The notes beneath the pieces are model-generated. The model ran no database searches. It worked only from the letters and a program-made list of their open reading frames with translations, and was not told the origin of the DNA. From NCBI RefSeq assembly GCF_048593235.1, contig NC_133622.1, positions 193,533,198 through 193,597,197 on the forward strand: a stretch of DNA of 64,000 nt, written 5' to 3'. This DNA comes from Sminthopsis crassicaudata. Taxonomy: Eukaryota. The position numbers were made by a program, and so were the translations under genes. This document shows positions 19,641 to 55,218 of the stretch, in pieces; position 1 is the stretch's first letter; the number at the start of each line of letters is the position of its first letter.

Positions 19641-29211
<9,571 letters not shown>

Positions 29212-30958
29212 GGCCGAGGCATGGAGCGGGGAGACGAGGGGATGGACTGGGGGGAAAGCCGTGTGGCGTCCGTCCGTCAGTCGGTCCGTAGATCTGAGTC
29301 TCCCTCCGGGGCCGAGCTCCTTTCACTGCGCTGCCCCTCCCCCTTGCCCCTCGCCTCCGCCCCTTCCTCCTGTTCTCCCCTTCCCTCTGACTTGTCCCAA
29401 CCCAGAAAGTGAGGGGAGGTTGTTGCTGACCCGCTCTGAGCTCAGATCTCTCCCCCGACCAGCGCCCCTTCGAAATGGAATAAAAAGCCGGGAAACTGAG
29501 GTTTCTCGAATATTCCTCTAGTCATCTTCCCCATCCCTAGTTCTGCCAGTAACCTCTAGGTAGGGAAATCCAGGAGGCTAAATTGGGAGAAGATGGGAAG
29601 GAGGGAGGGGAGGGAAGGGGGGAAGGGAGAGGGAGGAGAGATAGGAGGAGGGAAGCTCATCCACGTGCCAGGTTCTATCTACAACTTGCCACGCCCTCTT
29701 CTTCGGGCTGTCCAGGCTCCCAACCCCCCTTTTCTATCTGCTGGAGATGGAAGGGATGCTCCGCCCGGAGGGTCCTTTTCCATTGCGGCCGCAAGGCTCC
29801 AGCAGGGGGCGGGGCTGTGGGAGGAGAATGACCCTGTGGGGCCTGGAAGAGGGGGATTAGAGGGGATGGGGGAGGGGATTTTGCTCGGGGAAAGACCCTG
29901 GCAGTTAAGAAATGTAGGAAAAACCAAGCTCCTGGTGCCCAACGCGACCGTACCGGCCACCATTTCTAGGAGAGTGTGGAAGAGGAAGGAAACTGAGGCT
30001 GCGGGAAGTATGTGGGAGGTGGGAAACGGAGACTTCCATCTTTGTTCAAAGTCTGGCTCGAGGACTGGAGGCGAACACTGGCATCGGAGCTCTCCATCCC
30101 ACTTTCCTTCCCTCCGCCCCCACCATCTGCCACGTTCCCGGTTATGTAACTACAGCTGAGGCTGCAGATGCAGAAGGGAGGGAACCGGGCCCGACAGATG
30201 CGGGAGGGGGCGGGGCCGGCTGGGAGCTGGGGGGCTTTCGGCCGGCTCTAGAAGCTCTAAATCCCTCCGCTCTAAAAATTCTACCTGAGTCCAACGGAAC
30301 GGTTTCAGTCATTCTCTTCCTTCTTTGCCATCTCCTTAAGACCCGGGGAGGATTCCCCTCTAATTTCATAAACATTTATTGGATAAAAACCGCACATTAA
30401 CGACCCTCAAGGAACTTGTGTTCTCTAGGGTTGGATGGGGGTTGGAGGGCTATCCCCTGCATCCGAAAACTCGATCTCTTCCATCAGCCCCACCCGGTTC
30501 CGCTCCTAAGGTTGCCCCCCACCCACCCACCCGCTCAATGGGGTCACAATAGGATCAGAGTCGCCTCCCAGGAGCTGGGACTGGCCTGGAGAAGAGGGGC
30601 CTGGGCAGTTCCAAAAGCAGGGGTGAGACCTCGGCCCCCGGAAGGGGGTTGGTTAAGGCGTTCGCGGGCGAGCTCCTGGAGGGCGGAGGCGCCAAACGTG
30701 GAGGCCCCGGGGATGTGGGGGTCCAGGCTGAAGATGGAGAGGCCGAGCTAAAGCCGGGAGGAGGAGCTGAGATGGGAGAAAAAGGACTAAGACTAGGGGC
30801 GGAGAGAAGATTTAGCTTCGGGGAGAGGCGGGCGGAGCCGGTCTTGGAGGGGCGGTGCTTTATGGATCTCCTCTCCACCCTCCAGCCCCCAACCCAGCTC
30901 CTCCATTCCATCTGGGGCTGGCTGAGTCCCGGGCCCCGCGGGGTCATCCACGGCGGGA
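29212..30958. promoter_or_regulatory. GC/CpG-rich divergent promoter region between CPXM1 (-) and the unrecognised gene (+)
   Basis: GC boxes at 30206-30215, 30796-30804, 30830-30837 and 30849-30857; CpG-rich patches; two divergent ATGs 1748 bp apart. Confidence 0.6.
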
Positions 30959-31041
30959 ATGAACAGGAAAAAGACAAATTGGGACCAGCAGCTGAGGTCT
31001 GGCAACAATGATAACTCCCGTAGTCCTCCGCCCTCGAGTGT
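30959..31041 (+). CDS. Unrecognised gene, coding exon 1 (MNRKKTNWDQQLRSGNNDNSRSPPPSS V|)
   Basis: ATG with G at -3 (gcgggaATGA), about 100 nt after three GC boxes. Open frame up to the donor GT|GTGAGT at 31041/31042 (phase 2), which fits exon 2. Confidence 0.6.
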
Positions 31042-31424
31042 GTGAGTGACGGAAGCTTGTGGCCAGATGCTCCCCCAGAAGTTCCCGGCCCTATCACTCC
31101 ACTCTCCCAGGAGGAGCCCACTTGCCTTTCTAGACCCCCCCAACTCTGCTCTCTACACCTTCCCTGACCCTCAACTGGCCCACTCCTCCGTGCCCCATTC
31201 CCAGTCTCTTAGGATCCTATGATTTCAAAAGACCAGGCTAGGTTTTTGCCCTGAATCCGGGGACAGAGGAGGGGTTGGTGGGAGGGGGAGAACTTTGCGG
31301 GGGGCGGGGATTGGGGAATGGGATTTGAGAAGTGAAGCGCCCACAGCCGGCTGCTGCCCTCTGTCCGACACATAATCCCCTGCTCCACTTTCCGTGCCTA
31401 TCGTGCTGTGTGCCCCCCCCCCAG

Positions 31425-32016
31425 GTCCCAGAATTTGCAGGAGTACCCGGAGAGCGTGAGGAATACCCCACGCCCGCGGTGCAGAGGCAGGAGGAGGAAT
31501 ATTCGGTGCCGAAAATGGATTGAGGAATGTGCGAAGGCGTGCACTACCGGCGAAGACAGGGACCGAAACAAGGACCGGGACCAAGATGGGGACAGGGACC
31601 TGGACGACGACGACGACGGGGACGAGGACGGGGACGGGGACGCGGACGAGATTGGGGATGGGGATGGGGATGGGGACGCGGATGGAGATGGGGACGGGGA
31701 GGGGGACAGCTCCACGTGGCAGATTCAGTGCTCCAGCCAACCCAGCCAGTGCTGCACCGGCAGCAGCTACCTTTCCTCCGAAACCCGTCGGACGAGGCAC
31801 CCCGAGGCCTTCGGCTTGCACTGGCCTCATCCTCTGGAGCTGGCCCTGGACTTGTCCGCCGGCCTGGCCCTGCTGTCCTTGCTGGGAGAAGGGGGCTCAG
31901 AAATGATGCTGCCGCCCTTGTTCCTCTTTATCCTTTACCTGTTGCTCACCATGCCCTTGGCGATGGTGCTCGGCTGCAGGAAACGAAATCGAAGGCTGAC
32001 TTGGAGGGAGGGTTAA
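31425..32016 (+). CDS. Unrecognised gene, coding exon 2: basic/Cys segment, Asp-Gly acidic repeat, C-terminal hydrophobic hairpin (spliced protein 224 aa)
   Basis: Acceptor tgcccccccccccag|G at 31423-31424; 592 nt open to TAA. The hairpin LELALDLSAGLALLSLLGEGGSEMMLPPLFLFILYLLLTMPLAMVLG is followed by the basic stretch RKRNRR. AATAAA at 32269. Confidence 0.7.
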
Positions 32017-32268
32017 TCCAGAGCCTGGGTCTAGTACACGCTCAGCCCCGAACGCAGGGAGCTCTCCTCCGAAAGCAGACCAAATATTGAAGTCCATATC
32101 TGGAATACAGAGCCCCGATCGGAAGACAGATCCGATCTCCTTAATCTCTGCCTGACCTCCAACAAGAATCTTGCATTGGAAAGCAAGCACGGGAGCCCAA
32201 CACATAGCCCGAGTACAATGGATCCCAGACCCAAACAGGACTCAGACTGGAATACACCTGGTAAAAGC

Positions 32269-32274
32269 AATAAA
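32269..32274 (+). terminator. Candidate polyadenylation signal (AATAAA) of the unrecognised gene
   Basis: gcAATAAAgg about 250 nt after the stop at 32016. Confidence 0.55.
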
Positions 32275-32639
32275 GGGGCCCTGACCCAGCTGCCTCTCAG
32301 TATTTCGTCCTGCTGGATTGGGGATGGAAAAGGGGGCGGGGGAGGGGGATGTCATAGTGTTCTGTTGACTTCCAAAAACAGGCAATGGGGACTTGTGATG
32401 CTAGGTCTAACCATATGGATGAGACCAATAATTTCAAGGTTTGCAAATTACTTTTCTCAAATCAACCCTAAAGTAGGAATTATACCCAATTTACAGTTGG
32501 GGAAACTGAGATTCATATAGATTAAGCAACTTGCCCAATCTCCCCTAAATATAGTATGCTTTCCTCTAAGCTTCTCTACTATTTTAGATCTCAATTTATT
32601 TGATGAGGAACAAAATTTGAGAGACATGCTGGTGGGTTT

Positions 32640-33562
32640 TTGTTTTATTTTAATAGCATTTTATTTTTCTAAAACATGCAAAAATAGTTTTCAAAATTCA
32701 CCTTTTGCAAAACTTTGTGTTCCAAATTTTTCTCTTCTCCTTGCCCTCCAGAAGACAGCAATCAATTTGATATAGGTTAAACACGTACAATTCTTCTAGA
32801 TATATTTCTATATTCTATATATTCCATATTCATCATGAACACACAAAATCAGATCAAAATTATGAGAAAGGAAAAAAAAAGCAAACAACAAAATGGTGAA
32901 AATGTTATGCTTTGATCCACATTCAGTCTATAATTCTCTTCTCTGGATGTGGATGGCACTTTCCAACCCAAAGTCTATTTGAATTGCCTTGAAGTACCTC
33001 ATTCTTGAAAAGAACCAAGTACATCATAGTTGATCATCCCATGATCTTGTTACTGTGTACAATGTTCTCTTGGTTCTGCTCACTTCACTCAGCATCAGTT
33101 CATGTAAGTCTTTCCAGGCTTTTCTGAAACCAGCTGCCGGTCATTTATTAGCAATAATATTCTATTACATTCACATACCACAATTTACCCAACCATTCCC
33201 CAACTGATGGGCATCCACTCAGTTTCCAGTTTCTCACCACTACAAAAAGGGCTGCCACAAACATTTTTGCACATGTGGGTCCCTTTCCCTCCTGTATGAT
33301 CTCTTTAGGATATAAGCCTAGTAGTAACACTGCAGGATCAAAGGGTATGTACAGTTTGGGCATAGTTCCTAATTGCTCTCCAGAATGATTGCATCAGACT
33401 ACAACTCAACCAACAAAAGTCCCCAGTTTTCCCACATCCCCTCAAACATTTATTTTTATCTTTTCCTGTCATCTTAGTCAATCTGAGAGGTGTGAAGTGG
33501 TGCCTCAGAATTATCTTAATTTGCATTTCTCTAATCAATAGTGATTTAGAGAATTTTTTTCA
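32640..33562 (-). mobile_element. 5'-truncated L1 LINE (ORF2 C-terminus plus 3'UTR)
   Basis: ORF 33148-33363 reads YIPFDPAVLLLGLYPKEII...CAKMFVAALFVV..WKLSGCPSVGEWL.KLWY, the L1 ORF2 C-terminus. Confidence 0.9.
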
Positions 33563-40700: not shown

Positions 40701-43700
40701 GGGAGGATGTTAGTGGAGGCTCAGATGATCCTAATGTGAACATAGTGGGGGCAGGAGAGAAGACTCTAGTGATCTTGGTAGGTTCTACTCAGTTACTGTT
40801 TCCAAGGTTCCTCTTGTGCACATGTAGGTTATGTGTGCCCTTATGGGTCTGGCTAGATGTGGCTTGCAGGGAGGTAATAATGGATGTCTCTAGGGTTTAC
40901 TCTAACCTTCTCTAAGGGAGACTGTTCTTGTAGAAGGAGAAACAAGTTTGAGACCAGGGGCTGATCATACAACTCCACTGCACTTAAATTCCAATTCAGA
41001 TGCAAGTTAAGGCAACACTTATGGTATGTTGGTCCTGTTTGAAAACAAAGGATGAACAACAATACTACATCTGCTCTCTTTAGAGGGAGTTGCCAGAATT
41101 ATATTCATCTTCTTATTCCTTAAATATTATTACTCTAGGCAAACAAAACAAAATAAAAAAATTAAGTTCAAACAACTCTCCTGATCACTGAACCGAGTGT
41201 CCTAAGCTACATACCTGAGACTTGACTACCTTGCTGATAAATGCCAGTTCCACAATTAATTCACATAGCAGATTGTTAATCCGTTTATCCAAGTGAACAG
41301 CAAAATAGAAATCGGAGAAAGTATACAAAGGACCATATGTACCACATAATCTAGCCTGAATGAATTTTTTTGGGGAGAAGGGAAATAATTAAATTCTCTC
41401 AACTAAGAGTGAAGAGGGCCAGATCTCACCCAAAGGCAAATTCCCTGAAGTTTCTAGTGTAGTAAGCTGGGGAAAGGGATATGATCTAGTGCCTGCTCCT
41501 CTACATGTTGACATCTTCCTAGAGTTTCTCCCCCTTCAGAAACTTGAAGAGAGTCTGACATGAGAATTTTCTCCTTTGAAGCTAAAATCCAGAAGACCAG
41601 GATCTCTCTTCTCTCCAGTTCTCACCAGGGCAGATGAGTACCAAGACATTAGTCTCCAGTCATGAGGAAAGTTCCGTACAATGGGCCCTTTGAACCTAGG
41701 GTTACAAATGAAACAAATGGATCATGGAAATCTTCTTTCTATAATCTTTCCCACTCCCCCTCTCTCATTGCCCAGGACTGAGCATACTTGTGGATCCAGC
41801 TGGTGCAAAGAGAATTTGATCACAGCTATTATGTGTATGTAGGGTGTGTGTGTGTGGGGGGAGGATGACCTCTGGAGCAGCCCCCTGCTCTATATGTCAC
41901 AATGCCTTTCCTCTCCCCTGGCAGTGTACGTCCCCAGAATGGCAGGCCCGATAGGGAGGAGGTGAGGAGTGGGGAGGTTGGGGAGGGAGAAGAGGAAAAC
42001 AGGACTTCACAGTAATGACTGTGTTCCAACAGAGCTAGCCAGATCTTGCTTGTTCCCTGTGTTTGGCAAGGAGCTAATCTGGGGTCTCTAGGGCTGCCTG
42101 CCATGCAGGTCCCAGCTGTCTTGAGTTTATTGTTCTCTTCCTAATAACTTTAGTCCTACTCTACTTTGGTTCTGACACTGACACCCATCCCTCACTTCCT
42201 CACCAGAGTTCTTGTCTCCCCATCTGTGGTTCCTCCTTCAGAACTCCCCATTTCCTCCTGTGTTCCAAACCTCTTCTGATTTGCCCCAGAGATACTACTC
42301 ACAAGGTCTCCAATTTTCCATCCTTCTTTCTCTTATCTCTGCTTTTTCATCCTTGTATCTCTATCCCTTTCTCCTTACCCATGTCTTAGCCCTCCCTGCC
42401 TCCCTAGCCCCATTTTTCCATCTGTCTCTTTCTCAGCCCTGTCTCCCTCATTCCTATCTTCTCATCTTTGAGGCAGCATGCTATAATGGACAAGATACTG
42501 ACTTAAGATTCAAAAGAACCTGAATTCAAGTCCTGCTTCAGGAACTTACTAGTTATAGGATTCATTTTCTTCACCTATAAAAGAAGGGAGTAGACTTGAT
42601 GACTTCTAAGATTCCTTTGATTTCTAAAACTAAGAACCTACAACTAATGATCTTCCCATCTCTGCCTTACATTCCCCACCCCTATTCATCTCTCCTCCTT
42701 TCTCAAGTTATTGTTTCCATCTCTTTTATATCTGCATCATCCCCTTGGGCTTCTCAGCCACATTTTATGTTATTATTTCTCTCTCTCCTCTTAGATATCC
42801 TTTTTTGACCTGTGTTTTCCATGTTACTGGTTTCTCCTGGCTTTTCTCTTATCTCTTTAATTATTCCTCCATCTCAGACTTCATAAATAGAGATTTGGTA
42901 TCCAGATTATGGGAGGGAAAAGCCCTTCTGGACAATTTCCTGGACAATGGAGTTATTGGATTCAATTCTGGGCAACACATTTCAGGAAATGAGCCATTCA
43001 CTGGTTCCTTATCTTCCTTTTGCCACTTATGCCCAAGTTTCCCCTCATTCTAATCTAAGTCCTCTTCTTTCTCTCTCTCTCTTCCTTGATGATTTTGTCT
43101 ACTTCTGTAGTTCCATTATGACTGTCTCTGTGTATATAATATATATTTGTACAGATGATACCCATATCTATACTGTCATCCCTGATAGCTCCCCTGAGCT
43201 CCAGTCCTGCTGGCAGAGACATTACTAGCAATTTTTGCCTTGGGAAAGTGTTATGAAATAACGTAACATCAAATCAGCTTTCTAAGATAAATTTGGTTGT
43301 CAGGGAACAGACCTAGGATACTAAGAAGTTACTGCTGAATAGACCACTGCCTGCAGGGGATGTTTACCTGAGATGCAATAAAAGCTAGAAAGCTGGAGAA
43401 AGAGGCTGCATGGTAACTTACTATTTTAAATCATGATTCTTACTAACAAAATACTAAGAACCATTATTTCTATGTTCCTGAATGATTACTAACGTTATCA
43501 GTGTCTAATAATTTGCACCGTGGGGCAGAATCTCAGTCACCATGCCCTAGTTATATGTCTCTTCCTTTTGGACATTTTCCACAAGGATGTTCTTGTGGCA
43601 GATCAAACTCAACCTTAAATTCTAACCTTCTCCTCAAACTCTGCCCCAGCTCAAGTGCTCCATTGTTATCCAAAATGCATGGAGATACATCAAGAAGTGA

Positions 43701-44243: not shown

Positions 44244-46399
44244 GGGGGATGACAAACTTTGTCCCAGATCAAACCACTTTGGTAGCATTGAAAGCTTTCA
44301 GGTCCACAGTCTGTCCCTAAGATCCTGGAATAACAAGCCACTATACCCCCAAGAAAGCAGCAACAGGACCAGTCTGGACCTTCCCTGCAGAAGTGTGGCA
44401 ACTCTAATATCAAGTCTTAAGTCAGAAAGTAGGCTGGAAGAATGGGCAAAGAAGCAACGAAAAATAACCCTACCATAATGAGCTGGTATAATAGTGGCAA
44501 GGGTGCTAAGATACAAATGCAGAGGGAATGATTCCAAAGTATCTACAAACAATACCACACAGAAAAACAAAGTTTGAGCAAAAAACTCAAAAGAAAAAAT
44601 TAGGGAGTCTAATTAGACAATTCCTGGAGTGGCTCTGTTACATTTTGGTGATCTTAAGAGAAGAATGGAAAAAAAGAGAGAAAAAGAAAAAGTGTGGGGG
44701 AGGAAAAGGTTAGGAAAAATTATCACACATAATTAGGGTGCACAAGCAAATATACTTCAGCCTCTTTTGTCAGAACTGATTAAAGGAAGAAAACATGTAG
44801 AGTTAAGTAGAGAAATTTCATCGACAAAGAAAAAGGAAGGAAAGGGAAGAACAGAGGGGAGATTAAGGGAGGGATTATTTCTAAGCAAAAGCAGTTCTAA
44901 GGATGTACCAAAAATATTTATACCTCTTTTTTGTCCTATTAGCTAATATAATAGGTGTGAGATAGTACCTCAGAGTTATTTTAATTTGCATTCCTCTAAT
45001 AAGTAGTGATTTAGAGCATTTTTTTTATTTGACTTCTTTGTTTGAAAGCTGCCTGTTCATATCATTGGACTATCAATTGGGAAATGATTTTTTTAATAGA
45101 TTCTGCCATTGTAATATTCTCTTCTCTTCACTCACACTCTGTAGTTCAAATCCTCATTCCTACTATTTGTCTCTACTCTCTCCCTCTCTATCCTTCACAG
45201 AGCTACCACATCATATTTCTAGTGGACTAGTCTCTTCAGGCCATTCCCTTGTCCCCAAATCTTTAGTAGCTTCTCATTTTCTCAAAGTAGGACATGTATT
45301 TCTGACTCCAGCTTTCAAGATTCTATAATCTGGCTCCAAAACAGCTTTCCAGCCTTATTTCATACTATTCCTCATTCCATACACTGTGTTTCAGGGACGG
45401 AGTGCCTAGAGTGGCCATTCTCTCACCACCTCAACCATTTTCCTACTACAAAACTCAACTCTTGGACCTCCTCTTTCAGGAAATCTTCTTTATAATCTCT
45501 TCCCCCTCATCCCCAGGATGGAACAAGTCATAATGTTTTTATACCTCGATTTCCTCATCTATAAGATGAGGATATGCATCAGACTCAAAGAATCACTAAG
45601 GTCTATCTGAAATGCTATTATTCTATATTGAATTCTCATCCCTGGATACAACTTTTGTGGTGTATATATTGATGTCATATTGTTTTCCTAATGAGTGAGG
45701 GACAGTCAGGAGGGAAGAAAAGAATTTGAAAATAAAATTTAAAAAAAATGAATGTTAAATATATATTTTTAACATATTTAACATGTATTGGACTACCTGC
45801 CATCTAAGGGAGGAGGTGGGGGGAAGAAGGGGAAAAGTTGGAACAGAAGCTTTTATAAGGATCAATGTTAAACAAATTATTCATGGATATGTTTTGTAAA
45901 TGAAAAGCTATAATAATGAAAATGAATGTTAAAAACAATTTTTAAAAAGATTATAAGCTTCTTGAGGGCAGGGCATATGTTCTCTCACCAGGGCTTAGTG
46001 CAGCACTTTGTACATGGTAGATGCTCTATCTGTATTTTTCTGTTGGATTAAGTTGTCTCCCATATCTTATTCTCTCATCTCTTACTCCTCCGTTTTTCTC
46101 TTCTTTATATCCCTATCCCTACTCCCTTATTATTCTGACCTGTTCCACATGAAAGATAAATTTTTGGTAGGGAAAAAAGAAGCAAAATAAGAATGGAGCA
46201 GTTTTCCTTCTCTCTCTCATCTGTTATTGTCTCATTCTTCCTCTGAACTCCCTCTTTTCCTCAACATAGATAAGAACGCCTGACTTGTTTTGTCTTAAAA
46301 TTTTCCCTAGTTCTCTTTTGGATTTTCAACTTCTTTACATTTTTTTAATGGAACTATTTTGTGTTTATCCTCCCTTATCTATTCTCTCTCTTTCCCCAG

Positions 46400-46645
46400 G
46401 ATCCCTGTCAACACAGATCGAATGGGTCCAGCTGGGGGCCGGAGCCTGGAAGCTGGCGAGGGTCCTGAGCTTTTGGAGGGCCATGGAGCACCTTTGAGGA
46501 GTTCACTCACATTCTTGGATGGGGCCCTGGGCCTTGGTATACTCGGACTTGGTGCTCGCCTGGTCCTGGCCCTGGCTGGTCCAGCCATGATGCTCTTGCT
46601 GCTATTTCTGATGTTGAGTTTCCTGATGTTTGATCTTTTGCATGG
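46400..46645 (+). CDS. C20orf141: C20orf141 homologue, first recognisable coding exon (ATG at 46422, or continued from an upstream exon via the acceptor at 46399)
   Basis: IPV...EAGEGPE...FLDGALGLGILGL...GPAMMLLLLFLMLSFLMFDLLHG aligns with recalled human IPV...GAGEG...LLDSVLWLGALGL...GPALLLLLVSFLTFDLLHR. Donor GG|GTAAG; syntenic position. Confidence 0.85.
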
Positions 46646-46734
46646 GTAAGGGGCTGGATCTGCCTCAGCTCACCCCAATTTCTGGGACCTTGTGCTCTGA
46701 CCTCAGTCTCATCTTGGGTTTCCTTTCCTTCTAG

Positions 46735-54480: not shown

Positions 54481-55218
<738 letters not shown>

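Follow-up and report, generated by a model that had tools for sequence, protein, structure and literature searches.

The window analysed here is a 64,000-nt stretch of the genome of the fat-tailed dunnart Sminthopsis crassicaudata (assembly GCA_048593235.1), and all positions refer to it. Between a CPXM1-type gene on the reverse strand and genes of the C20orf141 and TMEM239 families on the forward strand, it holds a genuine, spliced and expressed gene for a small predicted membrane protein, LOC141546453 (Table 1). The spliced 224-aa model was 100% identical to the RefSeq entries XP_074130388/9, named "uncharacterized protein LOC141546453 isoform X1" of S. crassicaudata, and a protein search with the C-terminal half of the product also gave a 100% match, whose cluster also contained isoform X1 (224 aa). 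A preliminary description of this DNA had called the gene unrecognised. This does not hold, because the exact protein is already in RefSeq and five other marsupials carry orthologues annotated as "uncharacterized LOC"; LOC141546453 and the candidate are the same gene with no difference between them, and the orthologues share its architecture and its position beside CPXM1. The gene and its annotated orthologues are thus already listed, but as automatic predictions named "uncharacterized", and a full-text literature search on the LOC numbers, five in all, turned up no publication.

Table 1. Features of LOC141546453 and of its neighbours in the window (residue numbers refer to the 224-aa isoform X1).
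Feature	Position	Strand	Details
CPXM1-type gene, annotated CDS	20959-29783	-	runs beyond 20959; 820-aa product
Upstream non-coding 5'UTR exon	30528-30622	+	X5 contig of 30528-30622 stops precisely at the donor
Optional 5'UTR intron	30623-30885	+	GT..AG joint 30622^30886 in X5 and X10
Start-codon exon	30886-31041	+	5'UTR 30886-30958, CDS 30959-31041
Main intron, phase 2	31042-31424	+	joints 31041^31425 (X10) and 30996^31425 (X8, X10); intron of isoform X2 from 30997
Last coding exon, 592 nt	31425-32016	+	TAA 32014-32016; 100% identical to the RefSeq protein
Basic Arg/Cys motif, residues 45-67	31474-31542	+	PRCRGRRRNIRCRKWIEECAKAC; invariant R51, R52, R55, C56, E62 and C63
Acidic Asp/Gly tract, residues 73-123	31558-31710	+	degenerate hexamer repeat (GGGGAC)20 at its core, 31588-31707 (TRF)
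Predicted C-terminal membrane anchor	31831-31974	+	helix 164-182, acidic loop, hydrophobic helix 190-211; then a 12-residue basic tail
3'UTR	32017-32306	+	AATAAA 32269-32274; transcript end ~32270-32306
C20orf141-family main coding exon	46359-46649	+	Pfam DUF5562 (PF17717), E 1e-11
TMEM239 orthologue, single-exon	54550-55218	+	Pfam PF15841, E 3e-77

The transcripts were followed in undirected RNA contigs from four sequencing runs, one per study. One of these, X1, was set aside for splicing, since its depth was even (54) over the intron and the downstream DNA and no joints were present, a pattern resembling that of DNA or unspliced material. The gene comprises at least three exons, one non-coding 5' exon and two coding exons. 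The two-exon structure proposed before is therefore right for the coding part and incomplete as a whole, a further 5'UTR exon ending at 30622. This exon and the optional 5'UTR intron were recognised because of the joint between them and the start-codon exon and because of the X5 contig that ends at the donor. The donor (GG/GTGAGA) is identical in koala, and the acceptor of the same intron (CTCCAG/) is kept there. Contigs start at 30528 in X5 and at 30593 in X8, placing the transcript start upstream of 30593. The 5'UTR intron is retained in the X8 transcript, in which one contig runs uninterrupted over 30593-30994, and it contains all four upstream ATGs (30713, 30734, 30772 and 30862). Three GC boxes had been described in front of the gene. 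They are present at 30796-30857, but inside the transcript, within the 5'UTR intron, and not ahead of its start. Koala carries mutations in each of them; because of this and of their position inside the transcript, they are not regarded as the core promoter.

The coding part of the model stood as it had been drawn. The ATG at 30959-30961 has G at -3 and A at +4, with an in-frame TGA upstream at 30923; the donor GT/GTGAGT at 31041 closes a first coding exon of 83 nt (30959-31041) in phase 2; the acceptor consists of a C-rich tract followed by CAG/, ending at 31424, in matching phase; and the TAA at 32014-32016 and the AATAAA at 32269-32274 are both in place. The composition and the order of segments in the spliced 224-aa product are also as described. 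Two donors are available in the start-codon exon, 31041/GTGAGT for isoform X1 (224 aa) and 30996/GTCTGG for isoform X2 (209 aa); they lie 45 nt apart, are both in frame and use the same acceptor. In X8, the deepest run, a 560-nt contig with a word depth of 183 covered 30593-30994 and then continued from 31423 onwards. After a 2-nt shift, this jump equals the joining of donor 30996/GT to AG/31425, that is isoform X2, and it was the only junction assembled there. In X10, the predicted junction 31041^31425 was seen at depth 5 and the isoform X2 junction at depth 2.8. A poly(A) end had been expected near 32290, and coverage indeed stopped just after the AATAAA, with contig ends at 32270, 32286 and 32306 and a depth of 0 beyond ~32320 (X5, X8 and X10).

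This structure is shared with koala DNA, which has the same ATG, phase-2 intron, donor, acceptor and, at the homologous place, TAA, so that the start codon and splice sites are retained in a relative. The koala donor reads GTGAGTGACGGAAGC, and the donor together with the 17 nt after it is identical to the dunnart sequence from 31042. The AATAAA and the following 20 nt are also identical.

The head-to-head arrangement with CPXM1 was found in all six species, in each of which a CPXM1-type gene adjoins on the opposite strand, with a gap of ~0.7-1.8 kb between the coding starts of the two divergent genes. The CPXM1-type product carries the domains F5_F8_type_C, Peptidase_M14 and CarboxypepD_reg. 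Its model (820 aa; 746-831 aa in other marsupial models) begins with a short upstream first exon at 29680-29783 on the reverse strand, encoding MEKDPPGGASLPS..., an N-terminus that is unlike a signal peptide, and the exon may be an alternative one or a prediction error. The DNA between the divergent genes showed low-depth contigs at 30200-30520 in all four runs, which, being undirected, could belong to the CPXM1 5'UTR or to an additional exon farther upstream in LOC141546453; at ~30207-30218 there is a GC box (GGGGGCGGGGCC). On the other side of the gene, the region 32624-33200 is a high-copy interspersed repeat: in every run, its word depths lay between thousands and 500,000, and loose ends and false joints were numerous. 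An Rfam search of 29500-33300 gave no match.

Farther downstream, a DUF5562 gene follows at ~10 kb in dunnart and bilby. The annotated 161-aa C20orf141-family gene of the window begins near 41939, and the open frame of TMEM239 extends ~60 codons upstream of the Pfam match. To our knowledge, no function has been described for C20orf141 or TMEM239. Human had been described as lacking a protein-coding gene between CPXM1 and C20orf141, and an hg19-based gene list agrees with this, naming EBF4, CPXM1, C20orf141, FAM113A and TMEM239 and none between CPXM1 and C20orf141 (PMC3704668, Table 2).

Orthologues of 203-227 aa, colinear with the dunnart protein and all named "uncharacterized", were found in wombat (LOC114023412), koala (LOC110221113), bilby (LOC141518228), opossum (LOC103095854) and sugar glider (an unnamed Petaurus protein). 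Position and structure are kept across four marsupial orders, and the identity to dunnart is 40-54%; the opossum frame is still open at 41% identity. These orthologues come from gene predictions, which are made only where the ORF is intact, so that broken copies would be invisible among them. For devil and antechinus, the C-terminal-half search found no protein, though close dasyurids should share words with the query. When 1.84 billion representatives were scanned exhaustively by HMM with the C-terminal profile, three proteins came back, those of koala, bilby and opossum, and wombat and sugar glider were added by word-based searches. The protein word, profile and HMM searches, all run at the protein level, gave no relative outside marsupials, which is compatible with both origins suggested earlier, a marsupial-specific gene and one lost in eutherians. 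One profile search was dominated by Asp/Gly words, and its best 8000 candidates missed two members of its own query, so that its negative outcome weighs little. A PDB profile search gave no match, and the best score in an ESM Atlas feature search was a meaningless 0.52.

The genes downstream offered themselves as relatives. We rejected LOC141546453 as the marsupial orthologue or paralogue of C20orf141 or TMEM239, as both were found separately downstream and the profiles do not match. The three resemble one another in that they are small, lie in one cluster and encode proteins whose C-terminal half contains hydrophobic helices; in contrast to LOC141546453, the products of C20orf141 and TMEM239 have neither the basic Cys motif nor the acidic tract. 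A broader version of such kinship is that LOC141546453 is of therian or amniote age and has changed too much to be recognised, or that it descends from an old tandem duplication of C20orf141 or TMEM239; eutherians would then have lost it or keep it as an unrecognisable or unannotated copy. With change this rapid, an orthologue in eutherians or monotremes would escape detection by sequence: dunnart and opossum share only 41% identity, dN between dunnart and koala is 0.36, and the searches would fail at twice that distance. The C-terminal hydrophobic helices of the small neighbouring proteins point in the same direction, as does the one stretch that hhalign could align with C20orf141, which lies in the second helix. 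However, the hhalign probabilities were 5.6% for C20orf141 and 0.3% for TMEM239, a Pfam scan of five family members (E up to 10) gave no match to DUF5562 or PF15841 and no Pfam family fits, and the HMM scan gave marsupials only, a non-detection that is weak either way. Taken together, we consider such an old origin possible but unlikely.

The architecture of the product was deduced from the six sequences. The N-terminus is polar and shows no signal peptide. The first ~160 residues are probably disordered, with an Arg/Cys-rich basic helix followed by a poly-acidic tract of 40-55 residues, and a Ser-rich linker leads from this tract to the anchor. The length of the acidic tract varies between species via in-frame indels, and the tract probably grows and shrinks by repeat slippage. 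A reading of this tract as DxDxDG calcium sites was dismissed, as dunnart has eight overlapping matches, opossum two and bilby none, and only the acidity is conserved. A Pfam match to TrAA12, obtained in a scan of the dunnart product and the five orthologues, was below the cut-off and compositional, and was also discarded. AlphaFold2 with the six-sequence alignment gave a poor model, with a mean pLDDT of 49.5, and drew helices at 49-76, 164-182 and 190-211, the first with low confidence and the other two with a pLDDT of 62-77.

The last ~60 residues are predicted to form a helix-loop-helix hairpin, and 17 of the 31 invariant columns fall within residues 161-211. By Kyte-Doolittle hydropathy, a strong hydrophobic segment at ~188-212 reached a 19-residue maximum of 2.2-2.6 in all six species, in line with the membrane segment proposed earlier. 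The "hydrophobic hairpin" of the preliminary description does have its two segments, but the first is weaker than the second: the segment at ~163-181 exceeds 1.6 in five of the six species, and in dunnart one segment passes. Because of the basic flanks and the acidic loop, both ends of the hairpin would face the cytosol. Helix 164-182, which carries E166 and D170, might rest on the surface of the membrane instead of crossing it. This touches on a different topology, a single-pass tail anchor with helix 190-211 as its sole transmembrane span, which would put the basic tail in the lumen or the intermembrane space and make helix 164-182 a juxtamembrane amphipathic helix. The single dunnart segment above the 19-residue threshold would fit such an anchor, as would the distance of 12 residues from the end of the strong segment to the C-terminus, the lack of a signal peptide and the conservation of E166 and D170. 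The first segment passes the threshold in the other five species, however, the order of basic, helix, acidic loop, helix and basic fits a hairpin with cytosolic ends in five of six species, and AlphaFold2 draws two adjacent helices; we therefore regard the single-pass anchor as rather doubtful and the hairpin as the preferred topology. Tail-anchored and hairpin-anchored membrane proteins with disordered cytosolic domains are a general class and not a family. LOC141546453 resembles this class in having no signal peptide, a long polar N-terminal region, an anchor in the last ~60 residues and a short C-terminal tail; the class is one of topology, not descent, and the placement of the protein in it is based on sequence.

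Codon and substitution statistics were calculated for two species, dunnart and koala. The dN/dS was 0.67 overall; with the acidic tract left out it was 0.85, with a bootstrap 95% interval of 0.56-1.30. It was 0.48 in the hairpin and, on small counts, >1 in the linker and tail. Non-CpG divergence, measured in one global alignment, was 26-31% in the coding exons, 18% in the intron, 19% downstream, 21% upstream and 12-14% in the UTRs, and exon 2 differed from the intron with p ~0.01 and from the 3'UTR with p ~1e-4. The identity to koala was 85% in the 5'UTR (30593-30958), 84% in the 3'UTR (32017-32295), 79% in the intron and 66-71% in the CDS. The CDS, diverging more than the intron and the UTRs, thus changes faster than any other part of the locus, a pattern that points to diversifying selection or to mutation that is biased locally. 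The conservation of the UTRs may reflect regulatory or shared-promoter constraint, and, with a CDS that changes faster than intron and UTRs, the conservation of the locus could be partly regulatory.

Such values raise the question of whether the transcript is essentially non-coding, a divergent RNA from a bidirectional promoter of CPXM1, with an ORF that is a by-product of stop-poor, GC-rich and repeat-rich sequence. The UTRs are indeed more conserved than the CDS, the dN/dS is high, the 190 substitutions are spread equally over codon positions 1, 2 and 3 (62/63/65), and other frames of the same dunnart exon contain stop-free stretches of 188 and 199 codons. Yet both stretches are closed in koala, and the annotated frame is the only one open in both species. 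When the 190 substitutions were placed at random, 0.36% of permutations were free of stops (mean 5.2 stops; p ~0.004), and the 100 observed amino-acid changes were fewer than in 99.4% of permutations (p ~0.006). The ORF is full-length and colinear out to opossum in spite of 41% identity; ATG, TAA and phase are conserved, and the invariant residues cluster in the hairpin. We therefore judge a non-coding transcript very unlikely. Each of the four gaps in the protein alignment comprises whole codons, and in non-coding DNA the majority of gap lengths are not divisible by 3. Within the species, the CDS varies at two sites, 31509 C>T (TGC to TGT) and 31533 G>A (GCG to GCA), both of them synonymous third-position changes. 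We conclude that selection appears to keep the ORF open, with the anchor bearing most of the constraint, and that constraint at the protein level seems weak. These data are probably best explained by a genuine protein-coding gene, LOC141546453, which is transcribed divergently from the CPXM1-type gene.

The gene may have originated in the marsupial stem, within the CPXM1-C20orf141 interval and partly from the GGGGAC repeat, and have been under recurrent diversifying selection since then, except in the hairpin; its coding exons would change faster than its intron and UTRs because of that selection, and it may act in reproduction or host-pathogen conflict. We hold this full scenario to be even less probable than the old origin considered above. 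LOC141546453 resembles taxonomically restricted "orphan" genes. Like these, it is found in one clade only and encodes a short and partly repeat-derived product that is predicted to be largely disordered, and it shares with them a high dN/dS and a CDS that changes faster than the flanking non-coding DNA.

As to how the product might work, we infer a membrane-tethered and mostly disordered protein that would act via its charged arm. The protein would be inserted post-translationally into an internal membrane, where the conserved hairpin would be the working anchor. The arm, basic and then acidic, might provide tethered bulk electrostatics or low-affinity binding of cations; its exact sequence would matter little, or might be under diversifying pressure.

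The finding overturns nothing, as automatic annotation lists the gene already. It delimits well a clade-restricted gene that is small, expressed and syntenic across marsupials, over a span of ~80 million years of marsupial evolution, and for which no relative was found elsewhere. LOC141546453, with a CDS that is the fastest-changing part of its locus, is thus a usable case for how lineage-specific genes arise and persist, and a candidate for a marsupial-specific cell-biological function.
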